64,000 nt of DNA. Origin: Monocercomonoides exilis PA203 (lineage: Eukaryota > Protista > Preaxostyla). The stretch spans positions 186,001 to 250,000 of the forward strand of contig LSRY02000017.1 of NCBI GenBank assembly GCA_001643675.2, written 5' to 3'. A model generated the notes under the pieces. The model searched no databases. It was given only the letters and a program-made list of their open reading frames with translations, and was not told the DNA's origin. The number at the start of each line of letters is the position of its first letter. The first letter of the stretch is position 1. The position numbers and the translations under genes are program-made. Below, one piece after another: positions 12,711 through 56,352 of this stretch.

Positions 12711-12752
<42 letters not shown>

Positions 12753-23894: not shown

Positions 23895-24579
23895 AGGGAA
23901 TTGCTCAAAATTTTTACGTTTTAATTAATATTTTCTTTTTTATTTTCAAGTATTATTTAAAAAATCTAGCTTTTGGGTGAAATATCGAAAATACAAGCAA
24001 AAATTGTTTGTAATTTTGTTATATTATAAATCAAGGCATGTTAAAAATGAATTTTTCATGCTAACATCTATTATTTTTTTTTTCAAAGAATTATATGAAA
24101 ATGTGAAAATTGTGTGATATTCAAATTTTGACTTTTTTCAACTAAAACACAAAGAACTCTTTTTATTCCACTGTTTTCAGAGTAGTTATCAAATAATTAC
24201 GAGATATTTAAAAAGAAAGATGTTCAATCATATTGTTCATACACATATCTATATCTATATATCTATATATCTATCTATATATTTTATTTTATTAATTTTT
24301 TATAAAAAAGATAATGAAAAAAAAAAAATAAATCTTAAATTATGAAAACAAACCCTGTTCCATTTGAGTTCGGATTATAAAATGTTTCATAATCTTGTTC
24401 TTTAAAAAAAAAAATAAATAAAAATTCTTTTTTGCTCTGAATGAAAAGCCAGATTATTGAAGAATGCTATTCATGCCCATTGGTTTCAAGATGAAACATC
24501 AAATAAAACAAAGAATTTGACAATGCATTAAAAAAAGAGATCGTAGCTATTATTTTTTTTGCTTCAAAAATCAAATGAA

Positions 24580-27500
24580 ATGTCAGCAGTGTTCGTTGTT
24601 ATTTTTATAAAACTTAATTGCGAGCATTACAATTCTTTATTAAAAATTCAAGAAAGAAGATACGACAAAAGAATTTCAGAAAACTTGTGTGAAACATCAA
24701 AACATTTCGACTTTTTGAATAATTGTAAAATAACAGAAGATAACAAAAGACAGTTAAATAATGATGATATTGGATTTGTAGAAACAAAGATAATAACAAT
24801 TAATGCATCAGTGTGCTTGAAAGAAGTCAAGATGAAATCAACAAGCGAGAATAGATATTTGGTTGAAGAAAGGAAAAGCGCGCTTAGCGTGATTTCATGC
24901 ATTATTGTATTTAGAGGACAAAATGAGATAAGTGAATTTCATTGCATTAATTGCAATCTTTATATCATAAATGCAACACTCATTTCAAAAAATGATGATA
25001 ATTGCTTGAATCCTTTGGTTTCAGAAAATATTCAAATGAATGCAAACAAAAATCAGTATCATGCAATACTCATTTTGGACACAACCATGTCAAATAAAAA
25101 ATTGTTATACACACTGTTTTTGAATTCTTGGTCCAATTCCAATCATGTTATTCAATCTTCGTTTTTTCGGAATATATCATCTTCAATGAAAAGAAAGTTT
25201 CAAAACGACAGTTCGTCATCTTTAACATTTTTGAAATCTTGTTCTTTCAGTTCCGTTGATAATGCACTTGACGGAGGAATAGTTAGATCATGCGATATTC
25301 AATCATCATATTTCACACTATTAAACACATCTTTTGATTGTTGCAAGCGAATAAGGAACGAGGCAGTGATATTTATTGGGGGAGAGACACAAAGAAAACA
25401 ACCAGGAAGGCAGTTTTCATTCGATGAGAATAGCCATCAATTTGAATGGTGTGAATGGTTAAATGTGAATGGAGGAGATAACAACGGAGGAGCCATTTCC
25501 ATATCATGTCCAGGAGCAAATCGGTCAATATTATCTTGTTCGTTTGGAAATGTTTCAAGTAATAAGGAAGGAGGCGCCGTTAATTGCAATGGCTCAAATA
25601 CTGTCCTTATAAAGAAATGCAACTTTTCAGAATGCTCTGCGGCACATGGAGGAGCAGTTGAAATGTGGAATCCAGCAAAATATTCAAAATGGTCATTGAT
25701 TGAAAATAGAGTTGAGAAATGTTCAATCTCTGGAACGTATGGAACTGGATGATATTTTTGGTTGGACAAAATGGAGTCGACGGGGTATTTTTTGTTTGTT
25801 GAATGTGAATGCAATTCGAATACAGGAAATGATGCCACTGGTGCAGTAACGTTTAATTGGCCTCCTTCATGCAAGACACAGGAGTTTCTTTTAGAAGAAT
25901 GCAGATTTGCCAACAACAAATTAGTATCGTGCACTTCATATGGAGGGAGTGGCTTGAGTTTAACAGCAACTTTAGGATGGATGAGTGGTTTGAAGTTTAT
26001 CGTATTTTGCTTTTTTGATAGAAATTTTGCTGCTAATGGAAAAGGCAATGATGTTTATTTGCATAAAGATAGCATTACCGAATCTCCATTTAGTGAATGC
26101 GGATCAACATCTTTATCTCAAAGAATTTGCCGAAATAACAGTTCAAACAGTTCAACAATTAACAGTTGGATTCCTTTTGTCGCAAATATAACCATTGTTG
26201 GGAATGGCGGAACAAATTTTGATGGGTGTGGAAGATCAGAAGAAAACAAATGCGCTTCAATTGAATATGCGATTCAGCAAGTTGGCTTTTTTTCAAATGG
26301 AACAATAATGCTCACAAAATCTTCTTTTGTCCCAATGAAGTCAATGAACTTCGGGAGGCGTGTTGTTGATGTGGTTGGAAATGGCACAAATAACACGATC
26401 ATCTTTTCATCTTCAATCCCACCATCTTCTGTTTCATCAACATTGTCCGTAATTTTTTCGATCTCTTCAGGAACTGTGTGTATCTCCTGCGCAAACATTG
26501 CTCACAACTCTTTGAATACTCCAACGCCGGTTTTGTTTGAAGTCACTCAAAAAATAGGCTCGCTAGCACTGATGACAATTGTGATCGGGAGAGATCTTAT
26601 TGGATTTTCTCCCATCTCATCTCCATTGTTTGTTGTCACTGAAGGATCAATCAAGATTAAAGAAACAAATATTTCCTCTTTTGTTCTCGATAACGTAAAT
26701 ATTTTCCAACTGTTTTCAATGAAAGACGCATTAGAATTAAACTCATCGTATATTATTGATATCAGTTTTATGAACGGAGGGAAAAGTTGCGTTCTTTCAT
26801 CCTCAACATCTTCTGGAGCGTCGCTTGTGATCACCAACTGCACCATGACTAACATTGCCTCTGCGCAACAAAACCAACAAATCGCCACCAACGGCGGGTG
26901 CGTATCATTCGCTTCATCGACACCCGAAAATACGTTTTCTGTGAACAGCACCAAATGCTCTAGATGTTGTGTGAATGAGTGAGTGAGCGAAGGTGCAACA
27001 GGTGTAACAGGTGGAAGAGGAGGTTCACTTATGATCGAGTTCAATGAAGGCTCATTGGTGTCAGCCACCTCATTTGTTATGGCCGATGTTATGTTTTCGG
27101 GGAATAAGGCGAGCGTCGGAAGAGATGTGTATTTTGTGTGTGGGTCGCTTGTCGCTTTTGTGAAAGAGCCCTTGTTCGGATTCATGAGAAACATCACTCA
27201 GAAAGACAACTCGATTGTTGGACATGACAGAACAGATGCATTCGGGGACTGGGATGTGGACTTGTTTATATTTATCGATGGATATAAAGCTGACTTGGTA
27301 TATGTGGATGGAACATCTGGAGTGGAAGAGAAATATTGTGGGCCGGAGAAAGCGCCATGTTTGAATGTGAATTATGGAATGGAACATTTGAAGAGAACAC
27401 AAAATGTTAAAGAGGAGATTGTTGTGTGTTCAAATTCGTCTGTGATGGGGTGTGTAGACGTGAGTGGAGTGACAATGAAAAGCAATAATGCAAATAGCGT

Positions 27501-30500
27501 TGACGTGGAATGCAAGAAAGAGATTACGGGATGCGAGATATGTGTATTGAAGTCAACAACAGCTACCAATATAAATTGCATTGAATTTGCAATTCCGACA
27601 AGATTTGAAAAAACAGTTATATGCGTGATTGAATTTTTAGGGAATGCACTTTCGATTACAAACTGCTCACTGAAAAAATCTTCAATTTATCAAATGCCAC
27701 CTATAAGTGAAAAAAATACAGATTCCTCAGAATATGAGTTTGGCTTTTTGAGCATTGAGAAAGGGACTTTGAAAATGGAAAAATTTGAAACAAAAGGAGA
27801 ATTTGAATTTGGAGAGTTTTCGCTTATTGAACTGGGAGATAATCTTGAAAGTGCTGTATTTGTGAGTTGTATCATTAAAAGAATAACAAAAAATAATGGC
27901 GAAGGCGGATGGATTAAAGGTCATCTTGGAAGTGATATTCAAAGCATGGATGCATCAATTGTTATAGAAGGATGCATTGCTGAAAAATGCTTCTCATTTG
28001 ATATCGACAAAAACGGAGGGAAAGGAGGAGGATTATATGTTGAATTAAATGAGAAATGCGATTTGATTATAAATGAAACGAGTAAATTTAGAGGCTGTGT
28101 TGCAGGATGCAAAAACACAGAAGATGAAAATACAAAAGGAGCAGGAGGAGGAATCATGATAATGATGAATAGCATGGAAAGTTCATTTTCAATAAATAGC
28201 AATGAGATATTTTCTTCAGAAATGCCTAATAGAGCATGCCATGGAAAAACATTTTCGTCTTTGCATATGATTTACCATCCATTATAAATGGCAGTTCCAT
28301 TGGATTTGATCCCGAGCTTGGTGTCTTCGCCGCAGACTTTAATGAATTGAGTGGTGTTGAAAGCGAAATGTGAATAACATTGTTCCACTAATTCTCTTTT
28401 TAAGAGCATTTCAATCACCTGCATATGTTGGAGGGAAATTGAATGATCATGATTTTAGACTGTGCGGCTATGCGGACTATTCTTGTAAAACAATTGAAAG
28501 TGCAGGTGAATATCGCTTTCCCAACTCAAAACGTATTATCAGACTTATTCAAACATTTGAATTTGATGAAGAAATAATTTTAAATAGAGAATCATATGAG
28601 ATTGATTCAAATGACAAAAGCATTGCCCTAATGGTTAGATCAAGCAGTACCAAGTTTCGTGATGCATTGATAAGTAATAATGTTTTATCAACATTCGCAA
28701 ATATTTCATATACCCTTGGAGAATCAATAAATAGTCGCACTTTATTCATTCATTCATCAGCCGGTATTTTTAAACTTATTGATTGCGATATAAATACAAT
28801 GGACAGCGCGAATCCTGTGAAATACACATATAAGTGCAAGTGGAGGATCTGTACAAATATTAAAGTTGAATTGCAAAAATGAAAATCGAATAATTTTTGG
28901 AAGCCATCTAATATTTGTGAATGGAAGTGCAGAATGCGCAATTGATCAATTAACTGTTAATCGGATAAAAGCAAGCAGTGGTAGAGGAGTTATTGAACTG
29001 GAAACAAACAACACAACGATATTGCAAAATACCACGTTTTTTAATATAGCATCGGATGCAGGTGGGATAATTCATTTAGAAAAATGCTCTTCATTCAAAC
29101 TGAAGAACACGTCATTTGAAAATATATCAAGAATTACAGATGACGGAGCATGCCTTAGTATGCAAGCAAGTGACGACTTTAAACAAGAAATAAAAGTTGA
29201 GAACTGCTCTTTCAAAACATGTGAAGTGATTGAAAATGGAAAAGGAGGAGGGGGACTATCAATAACACTGAAAGGGTCATGTGAGCTTCAGGTAGTTTTA
29301 TCGCATTTTGAATCATGTTGCGCGCCTTCGGAAAGAGGAACACAAGGGAAAGGCGGAGGAATGAAGATAAGTCTTTTAAATGCTAATGCTCCATTTGTTT
29401 TGGCAGAAACAATCGAATTCAGATCAAATAAGGCAGAATATGGAAGCAATGTGTTTATTCTTTCACCTGACTTGAAAACAAGCATAACAAAAGATCGCAT
29501 ACTCTTTTCGGTTCCTATATCAGAATTCACCAACTTGGAAATGGAAACAGATTCAAAGTGGATTAACACAACAATTCCACTTATGTTCTATCTTGCTGAT
29601 AACCCAGAATTGGTGCATGTGAGTGATGATGGGCATGATACTTCTGCGTGTGGATTTGAGGAATTCAAATGCAAATCAGTTGATTATGCAATAAATAGAT
29701 TTTTAGAAAAAAAAAAGAAACATAGCATTTGGAAGCACGTATCAATTTTTGGAATGCATCGCTTTGAATGCAAGTGAAGGATACCACTTTTGTGGATTAA
29801 CAACAAAGTCAAAGATTGAAATGATGGGAAATGAATCAGATTGTTCATTTTTGATTGATATAACATCAAATGCTATATTTGAGTTGATGACATTTATTCT
29901 TCCTTCTTCGCTTTCATTGGCTCAAACGTGCATATTTGTGATTTCTGATAACAAAGATTATTTGGATATTGTCGACAGTTCAGCTGAATGCTTTCCATCT
30001 TCTAGTGGATGCAACTACTCATTTGTATGCTCTGAAGGAGGAAGGTTATCGATCATCAGCTTTAGAGTGGAATCAATAAAGTTCAATTTGGCAAATTTCT
30101 TGCTTTTGAGTGGAAATGGATTGACTTCAGTAAATAACATGACAATAAATTTTGTACAATCCTCAGATGAAAAGGGAATCATCAAATATACCTCTCAAAA
30201 TTCATTCTCAGTTGTCAATTTGACCGCTCGAAACTCTAACAGTCAAAATTGTGGACTTATATATGACTTAAATGGAAAGCTTCTTTCAATCAAAAATAGT
30301 TCATTTAACACGATAAAATGCTTGGAAGATAATGGAAGCACGCTTAATGGAGTGATAGGAGATGGAAACGAAATAGTAATATGTGACACAATTATTGAAA
30401 ATTGTGTTGCAGCAAAAGGATACGGAGGTGGAATTAATGTAGTTGTGCAAGGAACAGGAAAGCTGCGACTGGGAAGCAATTATGGCGCAACATATTTTGG

Positions 30501-33500
30501 CAAATGCGCAGCAATGGCAGAAGATACACTTGGAGGCTATGGAGGTGCAGTACTGTTGGGATGCATAGATGAAGGAAAAGATTTTGTGATGACAAATCTA
30601 TCATTTGGTCTTGGAGAATCAGGGAATTCTGCAACTTTTGGGGGGAAAAACATAATCATTGAAGGAACAAATTTATCACAGCTGGTAGATTTTCTTTCAT
30701 TTAATTTTTCGTTTTCATGGAAGGTTAGTGAGGATCCAGATTTGCAAGAAATGATGGGAATAGAGAACGGAGATTTTCTGAAATTGATTCCGCTTGCGTT
30801 ATTTTTTCGTGAAAAGCCAATTATTGGATACGTTGTTGGGACAAATAGAGGACTTGATTATTATCTTTGTGGAGATTACGATTTTCCTTGCCCATCACTC
30901 AAATATGCCGGAGCTGCTGTGTTTGGCTCGTCAAAAGCAGTTTTACGGTTGATGGATACTCCATAGATGAAGAAATGACGCTTGATGAACAGCCAATGAT
31001 AATTGATGGAATGCTTGAAACACAAAAAATAATTGTCAATGAAAATGAAATTAAAGGCGAAAAGGAAAGCTTTATTGAAATTACACAAAATGTTTCGTTT
31101 ATCTCTTTAGAGTTTTCTGTTTCTGAATTTGAAACATTAACGAAAATGTATATATTTTTATGTAACAATCTTATTCAAAAATTCGAAGAATGTTCATTTG
31201 CTTCAGAAACAGAATGTGTGAGCGTGGCATATATCTGCGGGAAAAAAGGAAAAGTCATATTAGAGAGGTGTAGAGTTGAAGAAATCTATATGGCAAAAAT
31301 TGGGGCAATTGTTCTTGACAGAGTCAATGCAGAACTTGTGCTTGAAGAAGTGTTATTAAGAAATACCACAAGAGAAGATGAAGGAAGCATAATAGATGTA
31401 ATACGTGGGAAGGAAGTCGCGATAAAGAGTTCAATAATGAAAGAAACCGAATTTTTAAAAGGAACCGAAATAAGTATTAAAGATGTCATTAGTTTTCAAA
31501 TCAGAAATAGCTCATTTTTTGAGATAAAAAGATACTATGGAAATGGAGGTGTGATGTGTGGACAAGTTGGAAACGGAAAGTCTTCAAATATTGAAAACTG
31601 CACCTTTGAGCGATGTGCTTGTGAGGCAGATAATTCAATAGGTGGGAGTATTTTGATGAGAACTTGCGACGAAGGGAAATTTTATTTTGAAGGCAACAAG
31701 ATTGACAGAAACATAGTTCCACCAGGAAGTGGAAAGGGGGGAGGATTGCATTTGACGTTTGAAACAGCAAGAATAGAATATTCAATGAAAAACAATGTAT
31801 TTTCTAATAATGTTGCAGAGAGAGGAGACGATATATTATTGGCGTGCCAGTTACCATGGATAACACTTCTTCAATCGTTATGGAACGGAACAATCACAAA
31901 CGAGACAGTGCAAAAGCGAATGTGGGTTCAAGACCTTTCTGATTTAAAAGAAGACTCTCTTGTTAATTACTTATTTCCTTTGTTGAGCTCGTGTGTGTTT
32001 GTGAATGAAGCAGGAAATGATGGACAAAACTGTGGTTTAAGAGAAAATCCATGCACTTCAATGGACATAGGATTTGATAGGATAAAGGAAGAGCAAATGA
32101 TCATTCAGTTTGAAGGAAGAGCACTTGTTAATAAAACAATAAATGGAAATGGAAAGTCTCTGACGATACGAGGAAATGAAAATATGCAGAAAATGCTTAT
32201 TGAAGAAGGAGGAAAATTTGAATTGACAGAAGGGGTTGCACAAACATATTTGTCTTTTTCATTTCTCCATATTTCAGTATCATGCCATGCAGAAAATCTT
32301 TCTGGGAAGCAATTGTAGAAATTTGGACTGGTAAATGTTCATTCGTTGATTGCTATTTCTCTTTTCCGAAGATACTCGAAAGGCATGTGAAAAATGGATA
32401 ATAGTTGAAGAAGGTGGATATCTTCATTTAGATGGAATAGAGTTTTTTGATCTTCTTTTTATGGAGAATGGAATAGCTCGATTGCATAATGGAAGAGCAA
32501 TTATTGAAAACAGCTTGCTTGTTAATGTGCAAGCAAATGGAATAAGTCTTGTTATTGGAGAATCAGGATCTGATGTGATACTGAGGAACATATCAATTAA
32601 AAATTGCGTTGAAGGCCTTGATGCATTTGTTTCATCAAAAGCAGGCTCAAATCTGAACATAACAGGGAAAAGTTTATTTGAAGAAACGTTGACAGAAAGC
32701 AAAAACGGAGGGTGCATTAAGTGTGAAAATGATCTGAATGATCAACTACTTGTCGAAATGTTATCAATAAAAAATGTTCTGCCAATATTAATGAAGGAAG
32801 AGGAGGTGGAATATATTTGGATTTATTAGATGATTGCCAAAACAATTTTTTGTTTTCAAATGTGCAATTTAATAGTAATCGAGCATTTGAAGCGAAAGAT
32901 TTGTTTGTTTCGTGCAGAAAGTTGAATGACTCAGTAATAACTTCAAGATTTGCATTTGAATACAAAAATGAAGGGTATGAAGTTGATATGAAAGGAAAAG
33001 ATAGAGATTATTTTGACGAAAGCGTTGATCTCCGAATGTTTCTTATGGAAAGGAAAGCTGAAGAAGTGTATGTTGCCAATGAAGGACACGACATTGCTGG
33101 ATGTGGAAGCAAGAGATATCCATGCCATGCAATGTAGAATGGAATTTTTCATATTGATTCAAATGAATTGTTGCTTAAAAGGCAACTTATTCTAAAAGAT
33201 AAAGGAATAATTGAAGATTTCTTTCTGTTTACTCAATCGCTAAAAATATCTGGATGTACCGATGAAGATAGAGAAACACAACACAAGTTTTTATTGTTTG
33301 AGAAAATAATAAAGGGAAATGCCGCTTCGTCTGTTATCACAACCACCGATTTTCTCACTTTGTTTTCATTGAACATGCACATTCCAACAAAATTTATGCA
33401 AAATATAAATGCATTGTTTTCATCAGTGGAAATCTTCTGCTTGAATTCTGCACATTTAGTGTACAATCGTCAAATGCTCTTGAATACTCGTTAATATCCA

Positions 33501-36500
33501 CGACAAAAGGAACTTGTTTGTTAGAAGCATGCAATTTTGAGAGATTTTCGTGTGCTGTATCTCCGTTGATCATTTTATCTTCCATTCTTCTTAATAACGA
33601 CAATTTTTCATATATAGACAATACGAAGAGTTTTGAAGGGAGCATTGCAAAAGTGTTGCTGAAAGAAGATGAAAATCTTGTAATCAATATGACTAATGCT
33701 TCATATTGCTCGCTTCATTCTAGCAATGGGAAAGGAGGCTTTTTTATCTGAATTGCAAAAAATGTGCCAGTTTAATCCCTTTAATTCTTGGAGGCAACGT
33801 GATATTTGGAAAAAATCTAGCAGATATTGGTAAGAATTTGTTTATTTTAGCGGTAGATCTGAATACGACTGTGAAGGAAAATACTTTTAAATTTGATTTT
33901 TCTTCAATCAAAGCTGACGGCAATTTGTTTGTCGGAAGTGATGAAACGCATATTAATAAAGATTTATTTATGTTTCTCATCCCTTTTGTTTCCCTTCAAA
34001 TATACGTGTCATCTAACGGTTTTGACGTTGCACGCTGTGGAAGCAAAGAAGAACCATGTAAAAGTGTATGGAAGAGTATTAATCAGATGAAAGAGAGCAG
34101 CGAAAAGAAAACATTGTATATTATTAATTCCACCATAATTAGAGATTTCTTCAATGCATCAAATTATTTGTTGAAAAAAGTCGAACAAATTGAGGGGAAA
34201 TTTATGAAAGCTGTAATATTCTTTGAAAAAGCAACAGAAAACAGCTTGGATTGTTATATGAGTAATGATTTATCGTTTTCGCTTTCGAACATTACACTCC
34301 AATTATCATCTGGCTTCGACAACACTGCTATCACTGTAATAACAAATAGAGCTGGTGACTTGATGATAAGTGAATGTTCTTTTCATTCAGAAGCTCAAAG
34401 AGATGCTGATTTTATTTGCATTTTTGTTTATGCCATTGAAGGAAATGTGAATGTCAATGATTTATCAATGAACTCCTGTTATATTGGAAACAACATTTTC
34501 TTAATAAAAGATACGGGAATTTCATGTGATTTATCAAATTTACTTGTGTCTGCATTGAATGAAACAAGAGGATGCATTATATCAATTGAAGAATCCAATA
34601 TTCACCATTCTGAAAATAGTGTACATGCCACAAGCAGCATGCATATTGAAAACTCGTCATTTTTGATATTGAAAAGGAGCGATAATCAAGTGAGTGTGCT
34701 TGAATCAAATAGTGATAATGGAATAGAATTGGAGATAAACAAGAGTTCATTCACTGACAACAAAACAGAAAGAAGTGAAAATGGAGGAGCAATATATTTT
34801 TCATTGTGTAAGGCGGGAACATTACTTATATCGGATTCAACAATCAGTCATTGTTGCTGCAGCAGTAGTGGAAAAGGAGGAGGGGCATATTTAAAATGTG
34901 AAGAAACTGAGTTGTTGAATTTTGAATTAGTCAAAATGAATATGAGTGCAAATACAGCAAAAGTTGGAAATGATGTATTTATCAGGTGCTTTAACATTTC
35001 ATCTCAGATCAATGAAAAGCAATTTCAATTTGATCTTCGTGAAAAGTCTTATGTTCATTTTAATGCCATATATGGATCTGACCTAACTGAACGCACAGGC
35101 GACACAAATTTAATTGATTTCATTACTATTTATCAAAGCGATACGATTATTGTATCAAGAAAAAATGGATTAAATGAGAGACAATGCGGCACATATATTT
35201 TTCCATGCTTTTCAGTTGATTATGGACTTTCTCATTTAACTTCAGACTATATCAGTCTCATGTTCGTTGATACAGAAAGCACGATAAAAGCAGAAGCATA
35301 TCTGGAAGAGATGAGCTTGACCTCTAAAAGCAGGTGTTTGTGTGAGGTGGAGATTGCAACAATGATCAAATGCACAAAAGAATCTTTTATAAAAACGTCG
35401 AACACTGTAGCGATATCGAGATTAAGCTTTATATTTGATTTAAATTTCATATCTTTTCATGATACGTTATTTTCGCCAAATGGAGGTTTACTAGAGATAA
35501 CTAACTGTTCATTTTGCTCAAAGCAGCCAGAGCATTCAGAGATTCTTGAAAATGCATATTTGCCATTTCATATTATTCAAATTACCGAAGGGAAATATCA
35601 TGGATATGATATCACAATAGAAAACTTGGTATTTTCAAAGCCTCCTTTTTTAGTTTCTTCTTCTCAGGAATTCTTGATAAGTATTGCTGTTTTTCGCAAT
35701 CTGGTTGTAGAAAGTTCACTTATAAGTGTAACCTGCAGTGGACAGCTTACGGTGAGTCATCTTGCTTTTGTTAACAATACAGTGTCAAAAAACGATTTAT
35801 CATTATTGTCTTGCGTGAGTGTGAAAAATCAGATACAGTTTTCAAACTGTTCGTTCAAAAACACAAATGCAGTTAATGAAAAAAGAAAATTTGCCACGAT
35901 GAATTTGTGCACAGATGTGCTGATAAATTGTTGTGTTTTTGATGGAAGTTCAATAGATAGTGAAATAGAAGATTCAATATTCAAGCAATGCAACAAAGTG
36001 GAAGAAGAGATATGTATGTGGAATGGATCTCTGATAGATGTGATAAATAGTGCTGCAATAATGAGGGATACTATTATCGAAAATTCTCCAGAAGGTGGAC
36101 TGAAAGTTAGCGGAGGTCATGTATCAATTGAAGCAGCGAATTTCAATAGCAATAATCCATTGATTGCTCACTATCCATCATTGAGAAGAAACATTGCTTG
36201 TACGCATTCAGGTAATTTGGAGATAATCAGTTTGAAAGGTGGAGATGGTTTGAAAGAAAACTCATCTCTTTGGATTCTGGAAAATGGATGTGCCTTAACA
36301 GGAATTATTTCTGAAAGAGCTTCTTCATTCTTTATTCCGGTTCTTGAATCAGTTGAGATGAAAGAAACTGGGGCAGAATTAACGCTGTCATTCAAAGGAA
36401 TGTTGCTGCTTCCATGCAATTTATCGTTTGCAATATTAAAAGAAATAGGGGATGAGGAATTTTTGGATAGATACATTATTGATGAGGGATGGCATGTATC

Positions 36501-37861: not shown

Positions 37862-38329
37862 ATGGAGAAATTCTGGATATTTCGATGCTTTTGAAAAAGA
37901 TATTTTCTTTTTTTATAAGTCATATTAAAGGTTGAAAGGGAAGGGTTTGCGATAGGAATGAATTGAAGAGCAAATCGAACGTAACAAATCCTTTATGTGT
38001 ATTTTCATGAACAATGGGTTAAATCTTTCGGGACTTGTGGTCTTTTGGAAGATAACTATGCATTTCATAAAAGTGTATCAAACATATGCACATATGTATT
38101 TGTGGCATGGTTTTTTTCTGGCCTGTTGCTTATTATTTCAGAGATTTTCTCTGAAGATTATGCATAATGAAAATGAAAGCATCATTGAGTTCTCTCGGAT
38201 TTTTTATTTATTCTACTAATACCATTAATGAATATAAAGCATTTATTATCATGATTTGCAATATTTTACAACCTATTGTTGGTAAATAATAATTATATAC
38301 GCGAAATATCTAAAATTTATATCAAAAAC

Positions 38330-38840: not shown

Positions 38841-38842
38841 AT

Positions 38843-41327: not shown

Positions 41328-41329
41328 AT

Positions 41330-42308: not shown

Positions 42309-45300
42309 TCATCTAATCAATGAATATCTGCTTTCAGCATCACTATCCCTATTTTCGCCTTTATTATTAGAACCAACCTCCAAGTCAATAGCATCAGAGG
42401 CAGTGACCATCACAGCCTCAGCCGGAAAGTGCCCAAACAGCTCTCTCTTCACTTCCAGCAATCCAGGCCTCTCCTCGCTATTCTGTGACACACATGCTTT
42501 CACCCCTGTTCTTAATTCGCAACCATCGATTTCTTCTGGCTGAGGTCTTTCTCCATTCGCAATTTTCTTTCCAGCTACATCTGCTTCATAGTCACCAAAT
42601 GGAATCTGGAGCGTCAGACACTCCCATGCCATCATTCCAATAGAAAACACAACAGACTTCTTTGTTGCCTCCATCTTCCTGTTCACCATCAGTTCTGGTG
42701 CCTTCCATCTCATACATTCCTTCTTGTTGTCTTCCTCATCCTCAAATGCAGATGAAGGCAGAGAGTCTCTATCATCATCCTCGCTTGCAGATGTCACAAC
42801 TGTTGATGAAGAGATGGATGATGAGTCTGAACTGTCATCAGAAGAAAAATCGGAATGTATCACAATGCAGATGACCATGTGCTCTGAAAACAGAACAATG
42901 TGCGGGCTGAGGTTGGCCAATGACTGAAGCTTGTTCTCCATCTCGTCAAATGAGTGCAGCGCCAGATTAGCCACCCAGAACAGGATCTGTGCAGCTGTCA
43001 TCTCTCTTTCTTGCAAACCCCAATCGCCATTTCTTTCTTCTCGTTCCTCCCGTGAAGCAGCATGAACAACGAATCCCTCAGATCTACAATCAACTTTTCG
43101 TGAGGCGATGAACAGGCCATTGCATCCACTAAGTTAGACATCCTTGTCTGAATCTCTCCCTAGAATGTTTTCTGTCGATTCGCTCTTGCTCAGCAAATAT
43201 TCTGTTGATTCTGAATGCTGCATTTTCTTTTTGCACATTCTTCTTTTTACCTTCTTTGCTTCACTCTCCATTTTTTTCTGCTGAATGTTGGGAGTTATTT
43301 CCATTGTTATCATTTCAAGTATCTTTGGATCCTTTTTTACAGTATCTTCCACAATCTCTTCCAATTCTTCTGTTCGCTCCTTCGCCTTTTTCCACCGAGC
43401 GATGAATATTATCGATACAATAAGAACAATCAAAAACAATACAGTCAACATTATAATAACAATCAAAGCCCATGATGATTTTCCTTCTTTTCCTCCTTCA
43501 GCAAGTTCATTGCTTACACCTGTTTGATCTTTGCTTCTGTTCTTCAGAATGAATGAATCAGTTGATGATGGAGCATTTGGATTCCCAAACAAAATATGCA
43601 CACTTACATCAGCATCATCTTTTTCATTTGCCACTACCTCTTTTGGTACTTTCCCTAATAGTTCTTTCTCAGATACATGCCATCCCTCATCAATAATGTA
43701 TCTATCCAAAAATTCCTCATCCCCTATTTCTTTTAATATTGCAAACGATAAATTGCATGGAAGCAGCAACATTCCTTTGAATGACAGCGTTAATTCTGCC
43801 CCAGTTTCTTTCATCTCAACTGATTCAAGAACCGGAATAAAGAATGAAGAAGCTCTTTCAGAAATAATTCCTGTTAAGGCACATCCATTTTCCAGAATCC
43901 AAAGAGATGAGTTTTCTTTCAAACCATCTCCACCTTTCAAACTGATTATCTCCAAATTACCTGAATGCGTACAAGCAATGTTTCTTCTCAATGATGGATA
44001 GTGAGCAATCAATGGATTATTGCTATTGAAATTCGCTGCTTCAATTGATACATGACCTCCGCTAACTTTCAGTCCACCTTCTGGAGAATTTTCGATAATA
44101 GTATCCCTCATTATTGCAGCACTATTTATCACATCTATCAGAGATCCATTCCACATACATATCTCTTCTTCCACTTTGTTGCATTGCTTGAATATTGAAT
44201 CTTCTATTTCACTATCTATTGAACTTCCATCAAAAACACAACAATTTATCAGCACATCTGTGCACAAATTCATCGTGGCAAATTTTCTTTTTTCATTAAC
44301 TGCATTTGTGTTTTTGAACGAACAGTTTGAAAACTGTATCTGATTTTTCACACTCACGCAAGACAATAATGATAAATCGTTTTTTGACACTGTATTGTTA
44401 ACAAAAGCAAGATGACTCACCGTAAGCTGTCCACTGCAGGTTACACTTATAAGTGAACTTTCTACAACCAGATTGCGAAAAACAGCAATACTTATCAAGA
44501 ATTCCTGAGAAGAAGAAACTAAAAAAGGAGGCTTTGAAAATACCAAGTTTTCTATTGTGATATCATATCCATGATATTTCCCTTCGGTAATTTGAATAAT
44601 ATGAAATGGCAAATATGCATTTTCAAGAATCTCTGAATGCTCTGGCTGCTTTGAGCAAAATGAACAGTTAGTTATCTCTAGTAAACCTCCATTTGGCGAA
44701 AATAACGTATCATGAAAAGATATGAAATTTAAATCAAATATAAAGCTTAATCTCGATATCGCTACAGTGTTCGACGTTTTTATAAAAGATTCTTTTGTGC
44801 ATTTGATCATTGTTGCAATCTCCACCTCACACAAACACCTGCTTTTAGAGGTCAAGCTCATCTCTTCCAGATATGCTTCTGCTTTTATCGTGCTTTCTGT
44901 ATCAACGAACATGAGACTGATATAGTCTGAAGTTAAATGAGAAAGTCCATAATCAACTGAAAAGCATGGAAAAATATATGTGCCGCATTGTCTCTCATTT
45001 AATCCATTTTTTCTTGATACAATAATCGTATCGCTTTGATAAATAGTAATGAAATCAATTAAATTTGTGTCGCCTGTGCGTTCAGTTAGGTCAGATCCAT
45101 ATATGGCATTAAAATGAACATAAGACTTTTCACGAAGATCAAATTGAAATTGCTTTTCATTGATCTGAGATGAAATGTTAAAGCACCTGATAAATACATC
45201 ATTTCCAACTTTTGCTGTATTTGCACTCATATTCATTTTGACTAATTCAAAATTCAACAACTCAGTTTCTTCACATTTTAAATATGCCCCTCCTCCTTTT

Positions 45301-48300
45301 CCACTACTGCTGCAGCAACAATGACTGATTGTTGAATCCGATATAAGTAATGTTCCCGCCTTACACAATGAAAAATATATTGCTCCTCCATTTTCACTTC
45401 TTTCTGTTTTGTTGTCAGTGAATGAACTCTTGTTTATCTCCAATTCTATTCCATTATCACTATTTGATTCAAGCACACTCACTTGATTATCGCTCCTTTT
45501 CAATATCAAAAATGACGAGTTTTCAATATGCATGCTGCTTGTGGCATGTACACTATTTTCAGAATGGTGAATATTGGATTCTTCAATTGATATAATGCAT
45601 CCTCTTGTTTCATTCAATGCAGACACAAGTAAATTTGATAAATCACATGAAATTCCCGTATCTTTTATTAAGAAAATGTTGTTTCCAATATAACAGGAGT
45701 TCATTGATAAATCATTGACATTCACATTTCCTTCAATGGCATAAACAAAAATGCAAATAAAATCAGCATCTCTTTGAGCTTCTGAATGAAAAGAACATTC
45801 ACTTATCATCAAGTCACCAGCTCTATTTGTTATTACAGTGATAGCAGTGTTGTCGAAGCCAGATGATAATTGGAGTGTAATGTTCGAAAGCGAAAACGAT
45901 AAATCATTACTCATATAACAATCCAAGCTGTTTTCTGTTGCTTTTTCAAAGAATATTACAGCTTTCATAAATTTCCCCTCAATTTGTTCGACTTTTTTCA
46001 ACAAATAATTTGATGCATTGAAGAAATCTCTAATTATGGTGGAATTAATAATATACAATGTTTTCTTTTCGCTGCTCTCTTTCATCTGATTAATACTCTT
46101 CCATACACTTTTACATGGTTCTTCTTTGCTTCCACAGCGTGCAACGTCAAAACCGTTAGATGACACGTATATTTGAAGGGAAACAAAAGGGATGAGAAAC
46201 ATAAATAAATCTTTATTAATATGCGTTTCATCACTTCCGACAAACAAATTGCCGTCAGCTTTGATTGAAGAAAAATCAAATTTAAAAGTATTTTCCTTCA
46301 CAGTCGTATTCAGATCTACCGCTAAAATAAACAAATTCTTACCAATATCTGCTAGATTTTTTCCAAATATCACGTTGCCTCCAAGAATTAAAGGGATTAA
46401 ACTGGCACATTTTTTGCAATTCAGATAAAAAAAGCCTCCTTTCCCATTGCTAGAATGAAGCGAGCAATATGAAGCATTAGTCATATTGATTACAAGATTT
46501 TCATCTTCTTTCAGCAACACTTTTGCAATGCTCCCTTCAAAACTCTTCGTATTGTCTATATATGAAAAATTGTCGTTATTAAGAAGAATGGAAGATAAAA
46601 TGATCAACGGAGATACAGCACACGAAAATCTCTCAAAATTGCATGCTTCTAACAAACAAGTTCCTTTTGTCGTGGATATTAACGAGTATTCAAGAGCATT
46701 TGACGATTGTACACTAAATGTGCAGAATTCAAGCAGAAGATTTCCACTGATGAAAACAATGCATTTATATTTTGCATAAATTTTGTTGGAATGTGCATGT
46801 TCAATGAAAACAAAGTGAGAAAATCGGTGGTTGTGATAACAGACGAAGCGGCATTTCCCTTTATTATTTTCTCAAACAATAAAAACTTGTGTTGTGTTTC
46901 TCTATCTTCATCGGTACATCCAGATATTTTTAGCGATTGAGTAAACAGAAAGAAATCTTCAATTATTCCTTTATCTTTTAGAATAAGTTGCCTTTTAAGC
47001 AACAATTCATTTGAATCAATATGAAAAATTCCATTCTACATTGCATGGCATGGATATCTCTTGCTTCCACATCCAGCAATGTCGTGTCCTTCATTGGCAA
47101 CATACACTTCTTCAGCTTTCCTTTCCATAAGAAACATTCGGAGATCAACGCTTTCGTCAAAATAATCTCTATCTTTTCCTTTCATATCAACTTCATACCC
47201 TTCATTTTTGTATTCAAATGCAAATCTTGAAGTTATTACTGAGTCATTCAACTTTCTGCACGAAACAAACAAATCTTTCGCTTCAAATGCTCGATTACTA
47301 TTAAATTGCACATTTGAAAACAAAAAATTGTTTTGGCAATCATCTAATAAATCCAAATATATTCCACCTCCTCTTCCTTCATTAATATTGGCAGAACATT
47401 TTTTTATTGATAACATTTCGACAAGTAGTTGATCATTCAGATCATTTTCACACTTAATGCACCCTCCGTTTTTGCTTTCTGTCAACGTTTCTTCAAATAA
47501 ACTTTTCCCTGTTATGTTCAGATTTGAGCCTGCTTTTGATGAAACAAATGCATCAAGGCCTTCAACGCAATTTTTAATTGATATGTTCCTCAGTATCACA
47601 TCAGATCCTGATTCTCCAATAACAAGACTTATTCCATTTGCTTGCACATTAACAAGCAAGCTGTTTTCAATAATTGCTCTTCCATTATGCAATCGAGCTA
47701 TTCCATTCTCCATAAAAAGAAGATCAAAAAACTCTATTCCATCTAAATGAAGATATCCACCTTCTTCAACTATTATCCATTTTTCACATGCCTTTCGAGT
47801 ATCTTCGGAAAAAGAGAAATAGCAATCAACGAATGAACATTTACCAGTCCAAATTTCTACAATTGCTTCCCAGAAAGATTTTCTGCATGGCATGATACTG
47901 AAATATGGAGAAATGAAAAAGACAAATATGTTTGTGCAACCCCTTCTGTCAATTCAAATTTTCCTCCTTCTTCAATAAGCATTTTCTGCATATTTTCATT
48001 TCCTCGTATCGTCAGAGACTTTCCATTTCCATTTATTGTTTTATTAACAAGTGCTCTTCCTTCAAACTGAATGATCATTTGCTCTTCCTTTATCCTATCA
48101 AATCCTATGTCCATTGAAGTGCATGGATTTTCTCTTAAACCACAGTTTTGTCCATCATTTCCTGCTTCATTCACAAACACACACGAGCTCAACAAAGGAA
48201 ATAAGTAATTAACAAGAGAGTCTTCTTTTAAATCAGAAAGGTCTTGAACCCACATTCGCTTTTGCACTGTCTCGTTTGTGATTGTTCCGTTCCATAACGA

Positions 48301-51300
48301 TTGAAGAAGTGTTATCCATGGTAACTGGCACGCCAATAATATATCGTCTCCTCTCTCTGCAACATTATTAGAAAATACATTGTTTTTCATTGAATATTCT
48401 ATTCTTGCTGTTTCAAACGTCAAATGCAATCCTCCCCCCTTTCCACTTCCTGGTGGAACTATGTTTCTGTCAATCTTGTTGCCTTCAAAATAAAATTTCC
48501 CTTCGTCGCAAGTTCTCATCAAAATACTCCCACCTATTGAATTATCTGCCTCACAAGCACATCGCTCAAAGGTGCAGTTTTCAATATTTGAAGACTTTCC
48601 GTTTCCAACTTGTCCACACATCACACCTCCATTTCCATAGTATCTTTTTATCTCAAAAAATGAGCTATTTCTGATTTGAAAACTAATGACATCTTTAATA
48701 CTTATTTCGGTTCCTTTTAAAAATTCGGTTTCTTTCATTATTGAACTCTTTATCGCGACTTCCTTCCCACGTATTACATCTATTATGCTTCCTTCATCTT
48801 CTCTTGTGGTATTTCTTAATAACACTTCTTCAAGCACAAGTTCTGCATTGACTCTGTCAAGAACAATTGCCCCAATTTTTGCCATATAGATTTCTTCAAC
48901 TCTACACCTCTCTAATATGACTTTTCCTTTTTTCCCGCAGATATATGCCACGCTCACACATTCTGTTTCTGAAGCAAATGAACATTCTTCGAATTTTTGA
49001 ATAAGATTGTTACATAAAAATATATACATTTTCGTTAATGTTTCAAATTCAGAAACAGAAAACTCTAAAGAGATAAACGAAACATTTTGTGTAATTTCAA
49101 TAAAGCTTTCCTTTTCGCCTTTAATTTCATTTTCATTGACAATTATTTTTTGTGTTTCAAGCATTCCATCAATTATCATTGGCTGTTCATCAAGCGTCAT
49201 TTCTTCATCTATGGAGTATCCATCAACCGTAAAACTGCTTTTGACGAGCCAAACACAGCAGCTCCGGCATATTTGAGTGATGGGCAAGGAAAATCGTAAT
49301 CTCCACAAAGATAATAATCAAGTCCTCTATTTGTCCCAACAACGTATCCAATAATTGGCTTTTCACGAAAAAATAACGCAAGCGGAATCAATTTCAGAAA
49401 ATCTCCGTTCTCTATTCCCATCATTTCTTGCAAATCTGGATCCTCACTAACCTTCCATGAAAACGAAAAATTAAATGAAAGAAAATCTACCAGCTGTGAT
49501 AAATTTGTTCCTTCAATGATTATGTTTTTTCCCCCCAAAAGTTGCAGAATTCCCTGATTCTCCAAGACCAAATGATAGATTTGTCATCACAAAATCTTTT
49601 CCTTCATCTATGCATCCCAACAGTACTGCACCTCCATAGCCTCCAAGTGTATCTTCTGCCATTGCTGCGCATTTGCCAAAATATGTTGCGCCATAATTGC
49701 TTCCCAGTCGCAGCTTTCCTGTTCCTTGCACAACTACATTAATTCCACCTCCGTATCCTTTTGCTGCAACACAATTTTCAATAATTGTGTCACATATTAC
49801 TATTTCGTTTCCATCTCCTATCACTCCATTAAGCGTGCTTCCATTATCTTCCAAGCATTTTATCGTGTTAAATGAACTATTTTTGATTGAAAGAAGCTTT
49901 CCATTTAAGTCATATATAAGTCCACAATTTTGACTGTTAGAGTTTCGAGCGGTCAAATTGACAACTGAGAATGAATTTTGAGAGGTATATTTGATGATTC
50001 CCTTTTCATCTGAGGATTGTACAAAATTTATTGTCATGTTATTTACTGAAGTCAATCCATTTCCACTCAAAAGCAAGAAATTTGCCAAATTGAACTTTAT
50101 TGATTCCACTCTAAAGCTGATGATCGATAACCTTCCTCCTTCAGAGCATACAAATGAGTAGTTGCATCCACTAGAAGATGGAAAGCATTCAGCTGAACTG
50201 TCGACAATATCCAAATAATCTTTGTTATCAGAAATCACAAATATGCACGTTTGAGCCAATGAAAGCGAAGAAGGAAGAATAAATGTCATCAACTCAAATA
50301 TAGCATTTGATGTTATATCAATCAAAAATGAACAATCTGATTCATTTCCCATCATTTCAATCTTTGACTTTGTTGTTAATCCACAAAAGTGGTATCCTTC
50401 ACTTGCATTCAAAGCGATGCATTCCAAAAATTGATACGTGCTTCCAAATGCTATGTTTCTTTTTTTTTCTAAAAATCTATTTATTGCATAATCAACTGAT
50501 TTGCATTTGAATTCCTCAAATCCACACGCAGAAGTATCATGCCCATCATCACTCACATGCACCAATTCTGGGTTATCAGCAAGATAGAACATAAGTGGAA
50601 TTGTTGTGTTAATCCACTTTGAATCTGTTTCCATTTCCAAGTTGGTGAATTCTGATATAGGAACCGAAAAGAGTATGCGATCTTTTGTTATGCTTGTTTT
50701 CAAGTCAGGTGAAAGAATAAACACATTGCTTCCATATTCTGCCTTATTTGATCTGAATTCGATTGTTTCTGCCAAAACAAATGGAGCATTAGCATTTAAA
50801 AGACTTATCTTCATTCCTCCGCCTTTCCCTTGTGTTCCTCTTTCCGAAGGCGCGCAACATGATTCAAAATGCGATAAAACTACCTGAAGCTCACATGACC
50901 CTTTCAGTGTTATTGATAGTCCCCCTCCTCCTTTTCCATTTTCAATCACTTCACATGTTTTGAAAGAGCAGTTCTCAACTTTTATTTCTTGTTTAAAGTC
51001 GTCACTTGCTTGCATACTAAGGCATGCTCCGTCATCTGTAATTCTTGATATATTTTCAAATGACGTGTTCTTCAGTTTGAATGAAGAGCATTTTTCTAAA
51101 TGAATTATCCCACCTGCATCCGATGCTATATTAAAAAACGTGGTATTTTGCAATATCGTTGTGTTGTTTGTTTCCAGTTCAATAACTCCTCTACCACTGC
51201 TTGCTTTTATCCGATTAACAGTTAATTGATCAATTGCGCATTCTGCACTTCCATTCACAAATATTAGATGGCTTCCAAAAATTATTCGATTTTCATTTTT

Positions 51301-54300
51301 GCAATTCAACTTTAATATTTGTACAGATCCTCCACTTGCACTTATATGTGTATTTCACAGGATTCGCGCTGTCCATTGTATTTATATCGCAATCAATAAG
51401 TTTAAAAATACCGGCTGATGAATGAATGAATAAAGTGCGACTATTTATTGATTCTCCAAGGGTATATGAAATATTTGCGAATGTTGATAAAACATTATTA
51501 CTTATCAATGCATCACGAAACTTGGTACTGCTTGATCTAACCATTAGGGCAATGCTTTTGTCATTTGAATCAATCTCATATGATTCTCTATTTAAAATTA
51601 TTTCTTCATCAAATTCAAATGTTTGAATAAGTCTGATAATACGTTTTGAGTTGGGAAAGCGATATTCACCTGCACTTTCAATTGTTTTACAAGAATAGTC
51701 CGCATAGCCGCACAGTCTAAAATCATGATCATTCAATTTCCCTCCAACATATGCAGGTGATTGAAATGCTCTTAAAAAGAGAATTAGTGGAACAATGTTA
51801 TTCACATTTCGCTTTCAACACCACTCAATTCATTAAAGTCTGCGGCGAAGACACCAAGCTCGGGATCAAATCCAATGGAACTGCCATTTATAATGGATGG
51901 TAAATCATATGCAAAGACGAAAATGTTTTTTCCATGGCATGCTCTATTAGGCATTTCTGAAGAAAATATCTCATTGCTATTTATTGAAAATGAACTTTCC
52001 ATGCTATTCATCATTATCATGATTCCTCCTCCTGCTCCTTTTGTATTTTCATCTTCTGTGTTTTTGCATCCTGCAACACAGCCTCTAAATTTACTCGTTT
52101 CATTTATAATCAAATCGCATTTCTCATTTAATTCAACATATAATCCTCCTCCTTTCCCTCCGTTTTTGTCGATATCAAATGAGAAGCATTTTTCAGCAAT
52201 GCATCCTTCTATAACAATTGATGCATCCATGCTTTGAATATCACTTCCAAGATGACCTTTAATCCATCCGCCTTCGCCATTATTTTTTGTTATTCTTTTA
52301 ATGATACAACTCACAAATACAGCACTTTCAAGATTATCTCCCAGTTCAATAAGCGAAAACTCTCCAAATTCAAATTCTCCTTTTGTTTCAAATTTTTCCA
52401 TTTTCAAAGTCCCTTTCTCAATGCTCAAAAAGCCAAACTCATATTCTGAGGAATCTGTATTTTTTTCACTTATAGGTGGCATTTGATAAATTGAAGATTT
52501 TTTCAGTGAGCAGTTTGTAATCGAAAGTGCATTCCCTAAAAATTCAATCACGCATATAACTGTTTTTTCAAATCTTGTCGGAATTGCAAATTCAATGCAA
52601 TTTATATTGGTAGCTGTTGTTGACTTCAATACACATATCTCGCATCCCGTAATCTCTTTCTTGCATTCCACGTCAACGCTATTTGCATTATTGCTTTTCA
52701 TTGTCACTCCACTCACGTCTACACACCCCATCACAGACGAATTTGAACACACAACAATCTCCTCTTTAACATTTTGTGTTCTCTTCAAATGTTCCATTCC
52801 ATAATTCACATTCAAACATGGCGCTTTCTCCGGCCCACAATATTTCTCTTCCACTCCAGATGTTCCATCCACATATACCAAGTCAGCTTTATATCCATCG
52901 ATAAATATAAACAAGTCCACATCCCAGTCCCCGAATGCATCTGTTCTGTCATGTCCAACAATCGAGTTGTCTTTCTGAGTGATGTTTCTCATGAATCCGA
53001 ACAAGGGCTCTTTCACAAAAGCGACAAGCGACCCACACACAAAATACACATCTCTTCCGACGCTCGCCTTATTCCCCGAAAACATAACATCGGCCATAAC
53101 AAATGAGGTGGCTGACACCAATGAGCCTTCATTGAACTCGATCATAAGTGAACCTCCTCTTCCACCTGTTACACCTGTTGCACCTTCGCTCACTCACTCA
53201 TTCACACAACATCTAGAGCATTTGGTGCTGTTCACAGAAAACGTATTTTCGGGTGTCGATGAAGCGAATGATACGCACCCGCCGTTGGTGGCGATTTGTT
53301 GGTTTTGTTGCGCAGAGGCAATGTTAGTCATGGTGCAGTTGGTGATCACAAGCGACGCTCCAGAAGATGTTGAGGATGAAAGAACGCAACTTTTCCCTCC
53401 GTTCATAAAACTGATATCAATAATATACGATGAGTTTAATTCTAATGCGTCTTTCATTGAAAACAGTTGGAAAATATTTACGTTATCGAGAACAAAAGAG
53501 GAAATATTTGTTTCTTTAATCTTGATTGATCCTTCAGTGACAACAAACAATGGAGATGAGATGGGAGAAAATCCAATAAGATCTCTCCCGATCACAATTG
53601 TCATCAGTGCTAGCGAGCCTATTTTTGAGTGACTTCAAACAAAACCGGCGTTGGAGTATTCAAAGAGTTGTGAGCAATGTTTGCGCAGGAGATACACACA
53701 GTTCCTGAAGAGATCGAAAAAATTACGGACAATGTTGATGAAACAGAAGATGGTGGGATTGAAGATGAAAAGATGATCGTGTTATTTGTGCCATTTCCAA
53801 CCACATCAACAACACGCCTCCCGAAGTTCATTGACTTCATTGGGACAAAAGAAGATTTTGTGAGCATTATTGTTCCATTTGAAAAAAGCCAACTTGCTGA
53901 ATCGCATATTCAATTGAAGCGCATTTGTTTTCTTCTGATCTTCCACACCCATCAAAATTTGTTCCGCCATTCCCAACAATGGTTATATTTGCGACAAAAG
54001 GAATCCAACTGTTAATTGTTGAACTGTTTGAACTGTTATTTCGGCAAATTCTTTGAGATAAAGATGTTGATCCGCATTCACTAAATGGAGATTCGGTAAT
54101 GCTATCTTTATGCAAATAAACATCATTGCCTTTTCCATTAGCAGCAAAATTTCTATCAAAAAAGCAAAATACGATAAACTTCAAACCACTCATCCATCCT
54201 AAAGTTGCTGTTAAACTCAAGCCACTCCCTCCATATGAAGTGCACGATACTAATTTGTTGTTGGCAAATCTGCATTCTTCTAAAAGAAACTCCTGTGTCT

Positions 54301-55594
54301 TGCATGAAGGAGGCCAATTAAACGTTACTGCACCAGTGGCATCATTTCCTGTATTCGAATTGCATTCACATTCAACAAACAAAAAATACCCCGTCGACTC
54401 CATTTTGTCCAACCAAAAATATCATCCAGTTCCATACGTTCCAGAGATTGAACATTTCTCAACTCTATTTTCAATCAATGACCATTTTGAATATTTTGCT
54501 GGATTCCACATTTCAACTGCTCCTCCATGTGCCGCAGAGCATTCTGAAAAGTTGCATTTCTTTATAAGGACAGTATTTGAGCCATTGCAATTAACGGCGC
54601 CTCCTTCCTTATTACTTGAAACATTTCCAAACGAACAAGATAATATTGACCGATTTGCTCCTGGACATGATATGGAAATGGCTCCTCCGTTGTTATCTCC
54701 TCCATTCACATTTAACCATTCACACCATTCAAATTGATGGCTATTCTCATCGAATGAAAACTGCCTTCCTGGTTGTTTTCTTTGTGTCTCTCCCCCAATA
54801 AATATCACTGCCTCGTTCCTTATTCGCTTGCAACAATCAAAAGATGTGTTTAATAGTGTGAAATATGATGATTGAATATCGCATGATCTAACTATTCCTC
54901 CGTCAAGTGCATTATCAACGGAACTGAAAGAACAAGATTTCAAAAATGTTAAAGATGACGAACTGTCGTTTTGAAACTTTCTTTTCATTGAAGATGATAT
55001 ATTCCGAAAAAACGAAGATTGAATAACATGATTGGAATTGGACCAAGAATTCAAAAACAGTGTGTATAACAATTTTTTATTTGACATGGTTGTGTCCAAA
55101 ATGAGTATTGCATGATACTGATTTTTGTTTGCATTCATTTGAATATTTTCTGAAACCAAAGGATTCAAGCAATTATCATCATTTTTTGAAATGAGTGTTG
55201 CATTTATGATATAAAGATTGCAATTAATGCAATGAAATTCACTTATCTCATTTTGTCCTCTAAATACAATAATGCATGAAATCACGCTAAGCGCGCTTTT
55301 CCTTTCTTCAACCAAATATCTATTCTCGCTTGTTGATTTCATCTTGACTTCTTTCAAGCACACTGATGCATTAATTGTTATTATCTTTGTTTCTACAAAT
55401 CCAATATCATCATTATTTAACTGTCTTTTGTTATCTTCTGTTATTTTACAATTATTCAAAAAGTCGAAATGTTTTGATGTTTCACACAAGTTTTCTGAAA
55501 TTCTTTTGTCGTATCTTCTTTCTTGAATTTTTAATAAAGAATTGTAATGCTCGCAATTAAGTTTTATAAAAATAACAACGAACACTGCTGACAT
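42309..55594 (-). pseudogene. Giant beta-helix receptor-pseudokinase, disrupted (right copy)
   Basis: Reverse complement of 24580-37861. It shares the stops and most frameshifts and differs at homopolymer-length sites. Confidence 0.85.
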
Positions 55595-56352
55595 TTCATT
55601 TGATTTTTGAAGCAAAAAAAATAATAGCTACGATCTCTTTTTTTAATGCATTGTCAAATTCTTTGTTTTATTTGATGTTTCATCTTGAAACCAATGGGCA
55701 TGAATAGCATTCTTCAATAATCTGGCTTTTCATTCAGAGCAAAAAAGAATTTTTATTTATTTTTTTTTTTAAAGAACAAGATTATGAAACATTTTATAAT
55801 CCGAACTCATATGGAATAAATCCTTTTTGAAAAGGAAGAGTGATTGAAAATTTTTGCAATTAAATATGGTGCAATTTTTTTTCTTCATTTTTGAGAAAAA
55901 CTGCAAGTTGTTCTGAGATTTTTTTTGTTTGACTTCATTATATGTCAATCTTACTGGCGAGAAAAAAACATGATAATATTATAAAAGATGTTGTTATTTT
56001 TAAAATAAATTCAAAAATTAATGAAATAAAATGAAAAAATGAAATAAAATAATTAACTTTTTAAAATAAATTAACGAATCCTTGGGTGGAAATTGTTTTT
56101 ATCTGTTTTATAATGTGTCACATTATGATCTTAAGTTTTTCATTGACTCAGACTTGCAAGGTTCAAATAACAAACGATTTAACAATAGATATTATTCTGG
56201 ATTTGCGTGAATATTTCTCAAACTTAAATTTCAAAAATGAAGAAATAAAATATCTGATATTTATTACGAAACATTTTCAAATATTGAAATTTTTTTCTCA
56301 TATTGATCAATCACAATATTATTTTATTTTTTGAATTGTATTTTGGAAAATA

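Follow-up and report, generated by a model that had tools for sequence, protein, structure and literature searches.

A 31-kb palindrome in the genome of Monocercomonoides exilis PA203, probably a fold-back duplication formed at a hairpin-forming transposon

A stretch of 64,000 nucleotides from the Nanopore assembly of Monocercomonoides exilis PA203 (C11:186001-250000, contig LSRY02000017.1; referred to as the window, with positions lacking a contig prefix counted from its first letter) was found to contain a 31-kb palindrome, composed of two 15.6-kb arms around an intact 240-bp miniature inverted-repeat transposable element (MITE), with one member of a giant receptor-kinase family in each arm. 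The palindrome is likely to be a real interstitial fold-back duplication, which would have arisen from a break beside the MITE, snap-back of the broken end, copying of the neighbouring 15.6 kb and a second join at microhomology. The arrangement is described as it is present in a single Canu assembly, with a total of 82,301,135 bases in 101 contigs. This assembly was reported at about 82.3 Mbp in 101 contigs, built with Canu 1.8 from R9.4.1 reads with an N50 of 8.9 kb, using the correction setting corMinCoverage 0, with chimeric reads taken out by Porechop, and polished with Nanopolish and then with Pilon (x10) (PMC8767320). Its authors acknowledged poor polishing of multi-copy regions (PMC8767320), and listed protein tyrosine kinases among the largest gene families, with an overlap with 'unclassified repeats'. 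No mention of palindromes in M. exilis was found in the literature.

The two arms are positioned as follows:
24365-39993, forward strand: left arm, 15,629 nt, with 0 substitutions relative to the right arm.
40172-55809, reverse strand: right arm, 15,638 nt, reverse complement of the left arm.

Self-comparison of the window yielded inverted repeats at 24358-40054 and 40111-55816 in collinear blocks, and the left arm was aligned by blastn to the reverse complement of the right with 99.82% identity over 15,701 columns. Not a single substitution separates 24365-39993 from 40172-55809. The arms differ by 14 indel events: in 13 of these a homopolymer run of 4-10 nt is longer or shorter by 1 nt, and the other involves a single AG unit. 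Such differences are expected of Nanopore sequence that is duplicated and poorly polished. The right arm has the longer run in 11 of the 14 cases, which points to two identical arms polished unequally. As the frame-breaking versions of these runs are distributed across both arms, neither arm is a low-quality copy of the other, and differences confined to run length fit two truly identical copies beyond the reach of short-read polishing. For annotation this means that exact duplicates are left unpolished in this assembly, which makes gene models in palindromes of this kind unreliable.

Both flanks are single-copy in the 82.3-Mb assembly and run on into the 1.65-Mb contig; the outer arm sequence is present exactly twice. 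A preliminary description of the window, made from its letters, had proposed two inverted 15.6-kb arms with a 178-bp spacer and unrelated single-copy flanks, both of which were borne out, by self-comparison and blastn for the arms and across the whole assembly for the flanks. It had also given the order along the palindrome correctly, as judged by profile, blast and translated searches: a receptor gene and an old Merlin element pointing towards the axis, a second Merlin element pointing away from it, the MITE, and the mirror image of all of these.

The axis is formed by the following features:
39959-39962: ATAT target duplication left of the MITE, self-complementary, with its partner at 40203-40206.
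39963-40202: intact 240-bp MITE, with perfect 31-nt terminal inverted repeats at 39963-39993 and 40172-40202.
39994-40171: non-palindromic core of the MITE, identical with the 178-bp 'spacer' of the palindrome, with 112 of 178 positions self-complementary.

The axis element is short and non-coding, has terminal inverted repeats and a target duplication, and belongs to a family of many copies, which together identify it as a MITE. In the genome, at least 40 full-length 240-bp copies were scored at 82-89% identity, out of 870 candidates. Members of the family end in inverted repeats of 30-31 nt and duplicate a 4-bp target, A(A/T)(A/T)T; terminal repeats and target duplications were found in 9 of 11 other copies. 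Its members are about 73-80% identical to their own reverse complement, and the partial self-complementarity of the axis core (112/178) is thus the normal state for this family. In single-stranded form the MITE is predicted to fold as one long hairpin (-63 kcal/mol, z -12.5). The perfect symmetry of the palindrome starts exactly at the terminal repeats of the MITE and its ATAT duplication; ATAT, being self-complementary, belongs to the palindrome as well as forming the target duplication. The flanks of the 11 other copies are unrelated and showed no inverted symmetry, so that mirror-image flanks are not a property of the MITE. An origin of the axis element as a Merlin derivative was ruled out by its 4-bp, rather than 8-bp, target duplications and its different terminal repeats. 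Elsewhere in the window, a fragment similar to the right end of the 240-bp MITE is located at 2424-2456, including a match to a 12-mer of the MITE at 2439-2450.

The MITE is flanked on both sides by Merlin sequence:
38843-39962, reverse strand: Merlin copy, nt 1-1123 of the 1454-bp family, cut off by the MITE; mirror copy at 40203-41327.
38506-38730, forward strand: possible remnant of an older Merlin transposase, matched weakly (29% identity over 75 aa, E 0.009); mirror copy at 41440-41664.

The inner 1.12-kb element was assigned to Merlin on the basis of an IS1595/Merlin-type DDE transposase, target duplication and short terminal inverted repeats. Its family is compact, with a length of 1454 bp, the terminal repeat GGCAAGACC and an IS1595-type transposase; sister copies are covered by PF12762 matches, and 8-bp target duplications were seen in four of the five full-length copies read. 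The copy in the window encodes transposase residues 12-311 with one frameshift, at 86-88% identity (tblastn). The sister copies run 331 bp further than the point of MITE insertion. This tail (nt 1124-1454) contains the transposase gene's 5' end, and it was found nowhere in the window, to either side of the MITE. Since Merlin continues in the sisters and its tail is missing here, the MITE had inserted into the Merlin, and palindrome formation removed whatever had lain to one side of the MITE. That the Merlin breaks off after nt 1123 (of 1454) to the left and right of the MITE alike fits the loss from one side that fold-back repair should cause, and the missing tail also bears out the earlier view of a 'double-3'-ended' element. 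A model with an immediate return of the new strand to its original template past the MITE was dropped, as the sister Merlins show that the MITE sits inside a tail-less Merlin. At C19:622496-626618, two further copies of the same Merlin family lie inverted to each other, one being truncated at nt 469 and abutting the end of the other.

The outer ends of the palindrome comprise:
24358-24364: outer left boundary, partner of 55810-55816.
55810-55816: outer right junction, with a mismatch at 55810 and then 6 nt identical to the left boundary at 24358-24363.
55823-55834, forward strand: 12-mer CTTTTTGAAAAG, identical to the terminal-repeat core of the MITE and placed 7 nt beyond the right junction.

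The right arm ends in CTCATATGGAA before the unique flank begins, and the reverse complement of the left boundary reads CTCAAATGGAA. By our own arithmetic, six matches would arise by chance with a probability of about 4e-4 at this base composition; that a lone substitution should fall so near the boundary (within 7 nt), with none in 15.6 kb, was rated equally unlikely. The natural reading of the right junction is a join at short, imperfect homology; alternatively, the boundary of the duplication could lie 7 nt further out and have acquired one later change. At the outer ends of the palindrome there is no target-site duplication (the left flank ends in ...CCCTG, the right flank starts with TAAATCC...), and the arm ends carry no terminal motifs. 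The open reading frames that run across the junctions measure 39-69 aa, a length at which annotation as genes is unlikely. The 12-mer is present in four copies in the window, with 0.15 expected. It could hint at a break made by the transposase of the MITE, and might mark a cryptic transposase site or a small fragile hairpin. The right flank was also considered as a decayed MITE, but was found to share no similarity with it beyond the 12-mer.

In the course of events that we propose, the ancestral locus would have held, in this order, one flank, the receptor-kinase gene or pseudogene, the old Merlin relic, the 1454-bp Merlin with the MITE, more DNA and the other flank, the 240-bp MITE having inserted at an ATAT site of the Merlin before the duplication. 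A break or collapsed fork beside the MITE would have started the process, with resection baring single-stranded DNA, in which the 31-nt terminal repeats and the self-complementary ATAT could snap back as a hairpin. After the unpaired tail past the ATAT had been trimmed off, the paired 3' end would have primed synthesis and the neighbouring 15.6 kb would have been copied backwards. The new end would then have met the opposite side of the break at a microhomology of 6-8 nt, in a join that would delete the Merlin tail (at least 331 bp) together with anything beyond it.

The palindrome matches such an origin in having two inverted copies with a short spacer, a spacer that is a pre-existing hairpin-forming inverted repeat, and a loss of sequence on the far side. 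Of the two options offered in the preliminary description, that of a very recent fold-back duplication is supported by the intact hairpin-forming MITE at the axis, the symmetry that starts from its terminal repeats, the loss of adjacent sequence and the probable microhomology at the junction. As the palindrome is symmetric, the original arm cannot be told from its copy. With arms this alike, either the event is very recent or arm-to-arm conversion has maintained their identity.

The repair background of the organism was assessed by profile searches of the genome. No Ku domain was detected, in line with reports of metamonads without Ku and DNA-PKcs (PMC8516963). Mre11 is present, with one match to its DNA-binding domain at C34:391148-391327; SAE2/CtIP was not detected in a genome search made without a positive control. 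A loss of classical end joining would favour resection and microhomology joining, and hence a fold-back outcome. The proposed mechanism is a known kind of DNA-repair accident, not a new kind of mobile element. An alternative transposition at reversed ends or between sister chromatids was worked through on paper and rejected: it would not leave a single MITE between two arms, but would give inversions, deletions or two-element structures.

Three points weigh against a fold-back duplication. An exact inverted repeat of 15.6 kb is hard to span with reads of N50 8.9 kb corrected at corMinCoverage 0 (PMC8767320); 15.6 kb of snap-back synthesis is long for a simple end-joining event; and a palindrome with a spacer of less than 200 bp is expected to be fragile.

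The cargo of the arms consists of the two copies of the receptor gene:
24547-37749, forward strand: giant receptor-kinase-family gene, left copy, transmembrane segment at 36700-36774, open pieces of up to 1104 aa.
42312-55627, reverse strand: giant receptor-kinase-family gene, right copy, transmembrane segment at 43398-43472, open pieces of up to 1245 aa.

Each copy is a member of a giant receptor family, with a long ectodomain, one transmembrane segment and a kinase-like tail. The broken gene was searched as separate pieces and not read through. The ectodomain showed PMP/beta-helix-like motifs, with further support being weak; the tail matched PF07714 (1.1e-10), and its best matches in the PDB, as the nearest solved structures, were the pseudokinases ILK and RYK. 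For the kinase tail, at least 141 relatives were scored out of 2,120 candidates, most of them in uninterrupted open frames of 2,500-4,200 codons. The gene in the palindrome has four in-frame stops and about five frame changes common to both arms, even when the frame-keeping version is taken at each discordant run. The stops are placed at 25750, 26980, 33135 and 37036 in the left arm and at the mirror positions in the right. Short introns were considered as a means to rescue the common stops, and rejected for lack of convincing splice sites or dips in GC content. As far as the sequence tells, the cargo gene is probably a pseudogene that was duplicated as such, and part of the common frame changes could be systematic Nanopore errors. 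A further paralogue, noted earlier at the left edge of the window, is real and ends at 1-152.

Inverted pairs recur in the receptor family. A second tail-to-tail pair, checked at the sequence level, lies on the same contig (C11:853142-861888 and 876855-885540), with arms of 8.8 kb, 85% identity and a spacer of about 15 kb. An assembly artefact cannot account for arms that have diverged, so that inverted duplicates do persist in the receptor family. Among the matches to the kinase tail, pairs with equal scores were found tail to tail at C36:844479/852793, C36:538391/542526, C58:237173/245415 and C47:297337/323801, and head to head at C11:1080314/1136032, C9:1471990/1492772 and C20:795634/818228. 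These close equal-score pairs, known as match pairs alone, are candidates for further near-identical palindromes. Also on the same contig is an inverted repeat at C11:830001-830652 and 835854-836505, with 99.85% identity and a 5.2-kb spacer, which reaches the edge of the examined stretch and may thus be larger.

The preliminary description had suggested that the palindrome could be the mechanism by which the receptor family expands. In favour of this, tail-to-tail pairs do recur, one of them confirmed in sequence; against it, the roughly 2,000 candidate loci are mostly unpaired, and the cargo is broken by the common in-frame stops. Being broken in both arms, the cargo shows a route to new copies rather than a working gain. 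Expansion by fold-back is a plausible route among several, weakened by the broken cargo. In a broader and rather doubtful version of this idea, hairpin-forming transposons would be recurrent fold-back seeds in a protist without Ku, palindromic tail-to-tail twinning would be a main birth route for the family of about 2,000 loci, and arm-to-arm conversion would then shape its diversity.

Four other explanations were weighed against a recent fold-back duplication. The palindrome may have formed in the same way but not very recently, its arms being kept identical by arm-to-arm gene conversion, which we regard as possible, though not probable. It would account for arms without a substitution in 15.6 kb although their cargo already has common stops. 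Against it, nothing in the data dates the event, conversion is not universal in this genome, as the inverted pair on the same contig, with its 15-kb spacer, has diverged to 85% identity, and homogenisation has not reached the two MITE halves.

That the second arm and its join to the right flank are an assembly artefact, produced from a single genomic arm by chimeric or fold-back Nanopore reads or by a Canu misjoin, we consider unlikely. In favour of it are arms that are identical but for sequencing-type noise, and reads with an N50 below the arm length that were corrected at corMinCoverage 0. As both flanks are unique and continue into the 1.65-Mb contig, it would however need two independent chimeric joins, one placed exactly at the MITE hairpin and one 15.6 kb away at the probable microhomology, and would have to go on into more than 1.4 Mb of unique contig. 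A fold-back read would enter the reverse complement of the left flank and not a different unique flank. Independent consensus errors in both arms, the removal of chimeric reads by Porechop and the diverged inverted pair of the receptor family nearby equally count against an artefact, and so do two scars of biological origin, the loss of the Merlin tail and the homology at the junction.

Very improbable is an order of events in which a palindrome without spacer formed first, at an ATAT in the Merlin, and the MITE inserted later exactly at its centre. Without the MITE and one ATAT, the sequence is indeed a perfect palindrome centred on ATAT, a preferred target of the MITE, but the 31 kb offer hundreds of A(A/T)(A/T)T sites, of which the insertion would have had to hit one in particular, in a spacer-less 31-kb palindrome that should have been very unstable; a hairpin seed requires no such coincidence. 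We give hardly any credence to the palindromic cargo-carrying unit, the other option of the preliminary description: a giant fold-back-type transposon with 15.6-kb terminal repeats that carry the receptor gene, around transposon material, would have this overall shape, but the outer ends of the palindrome lack both a target-site duplication and a terminal motif, only the two arms match in 82.3 Mb and no copy is found elsewhere, and at the centre lie an ordinary MITE and a Merlin in truncated form, each with its own, different ends.

Outside the palindrome, one flanking gene was identified by its domain:
56353-59415, forward strand: Suf/CstF77 homologue, right-flank gene (PF05843, 4.9e-78), starting 537 bp outside the palindrome.

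Of the earlier flank labels, CstF77 is confirmed by this match; 'POT1', 'D-box' and 'Rab21' were not confirmed, and the 1417-aa open reading frame in the left flank gave no match in Pfam. Further to the left, at 1280-1912, two 302-nt arms with 98% complementarity enclose a 29-nt spacer; this small palindrome is probably a further fold-back or MITE-like element. A 2,492-codon open frame on the reverse strand (10647-18125) has one RRM as its sole Pfam match; in this region, the GC content reaches 49% and the GC skew 0.36-0.44.

If confirmed by reads, the palindrome would be an unusually legible natural record of a transposon hairpin turning a break into a large palindrome, and would give a concrete example of how copies are added to the largest gene family of an organism that lacks classical end joining. 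Its value lies in the completeness of the footprint: the seed survives intact, the missing sequence is identifiable and the second junction can be seen. Among known systems, origin-dependent inverted-repeat amplification (ODIRA) is alike in giving inverted copies by a replication-based template switch at short inverted repeats (PMC4689423). It differs in producing an inverted triplication with two inverted-repeat junctions (PMC4689423); the three copies with an inverted middle copy were not encountered here, as the assembly holds two copies and one inverted-repeat junction. Fold-back or long-terminal-repeat DNA transposons that carry cargo share the long inverted termini around a short centre, but the palindrome of M. 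exilis is single, and lacks a target duplication and terminal motifs. The ampliconic palindromes of the primate X and Y chromosomes have kilobase spacers, and their identity has been held by demonstrated gene conversion over millions of years. Like the palindrome described here they have gene-bearing arms of tens of kilobases, near-total identity and cargo from multigene families; in contrast to their kilobase spacers and demonstrated conversion, the M. exilis palindrome has a short spacer and is known from a single genome.

The closest likeness is to fold-back duplications. Large palindromes seeded by short inverted repeats were reportedly observed by Butler in 1996 and Tanaka in 2002. Fold-back repair and inverted duplications seeded in this way have been described in more recent work (PMC3907307, PMC10164571). 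The fold-back duplications of yeast, mammalian cells and the human germline have the same anatomy, with arms around a pre-existing inverted repeat and its loop and loss of distal sequence; their second junction lies at microhomology, as it probably does here. Compared with these, the product in M. exilis is interstitial and small, with arms of 15.6 kb, and both sides of the chromosome have been kept; it is neither a terminal inverted duplication with deletion nor dicentric. Its seed is an intact MITE, and its host a protist without Ku.

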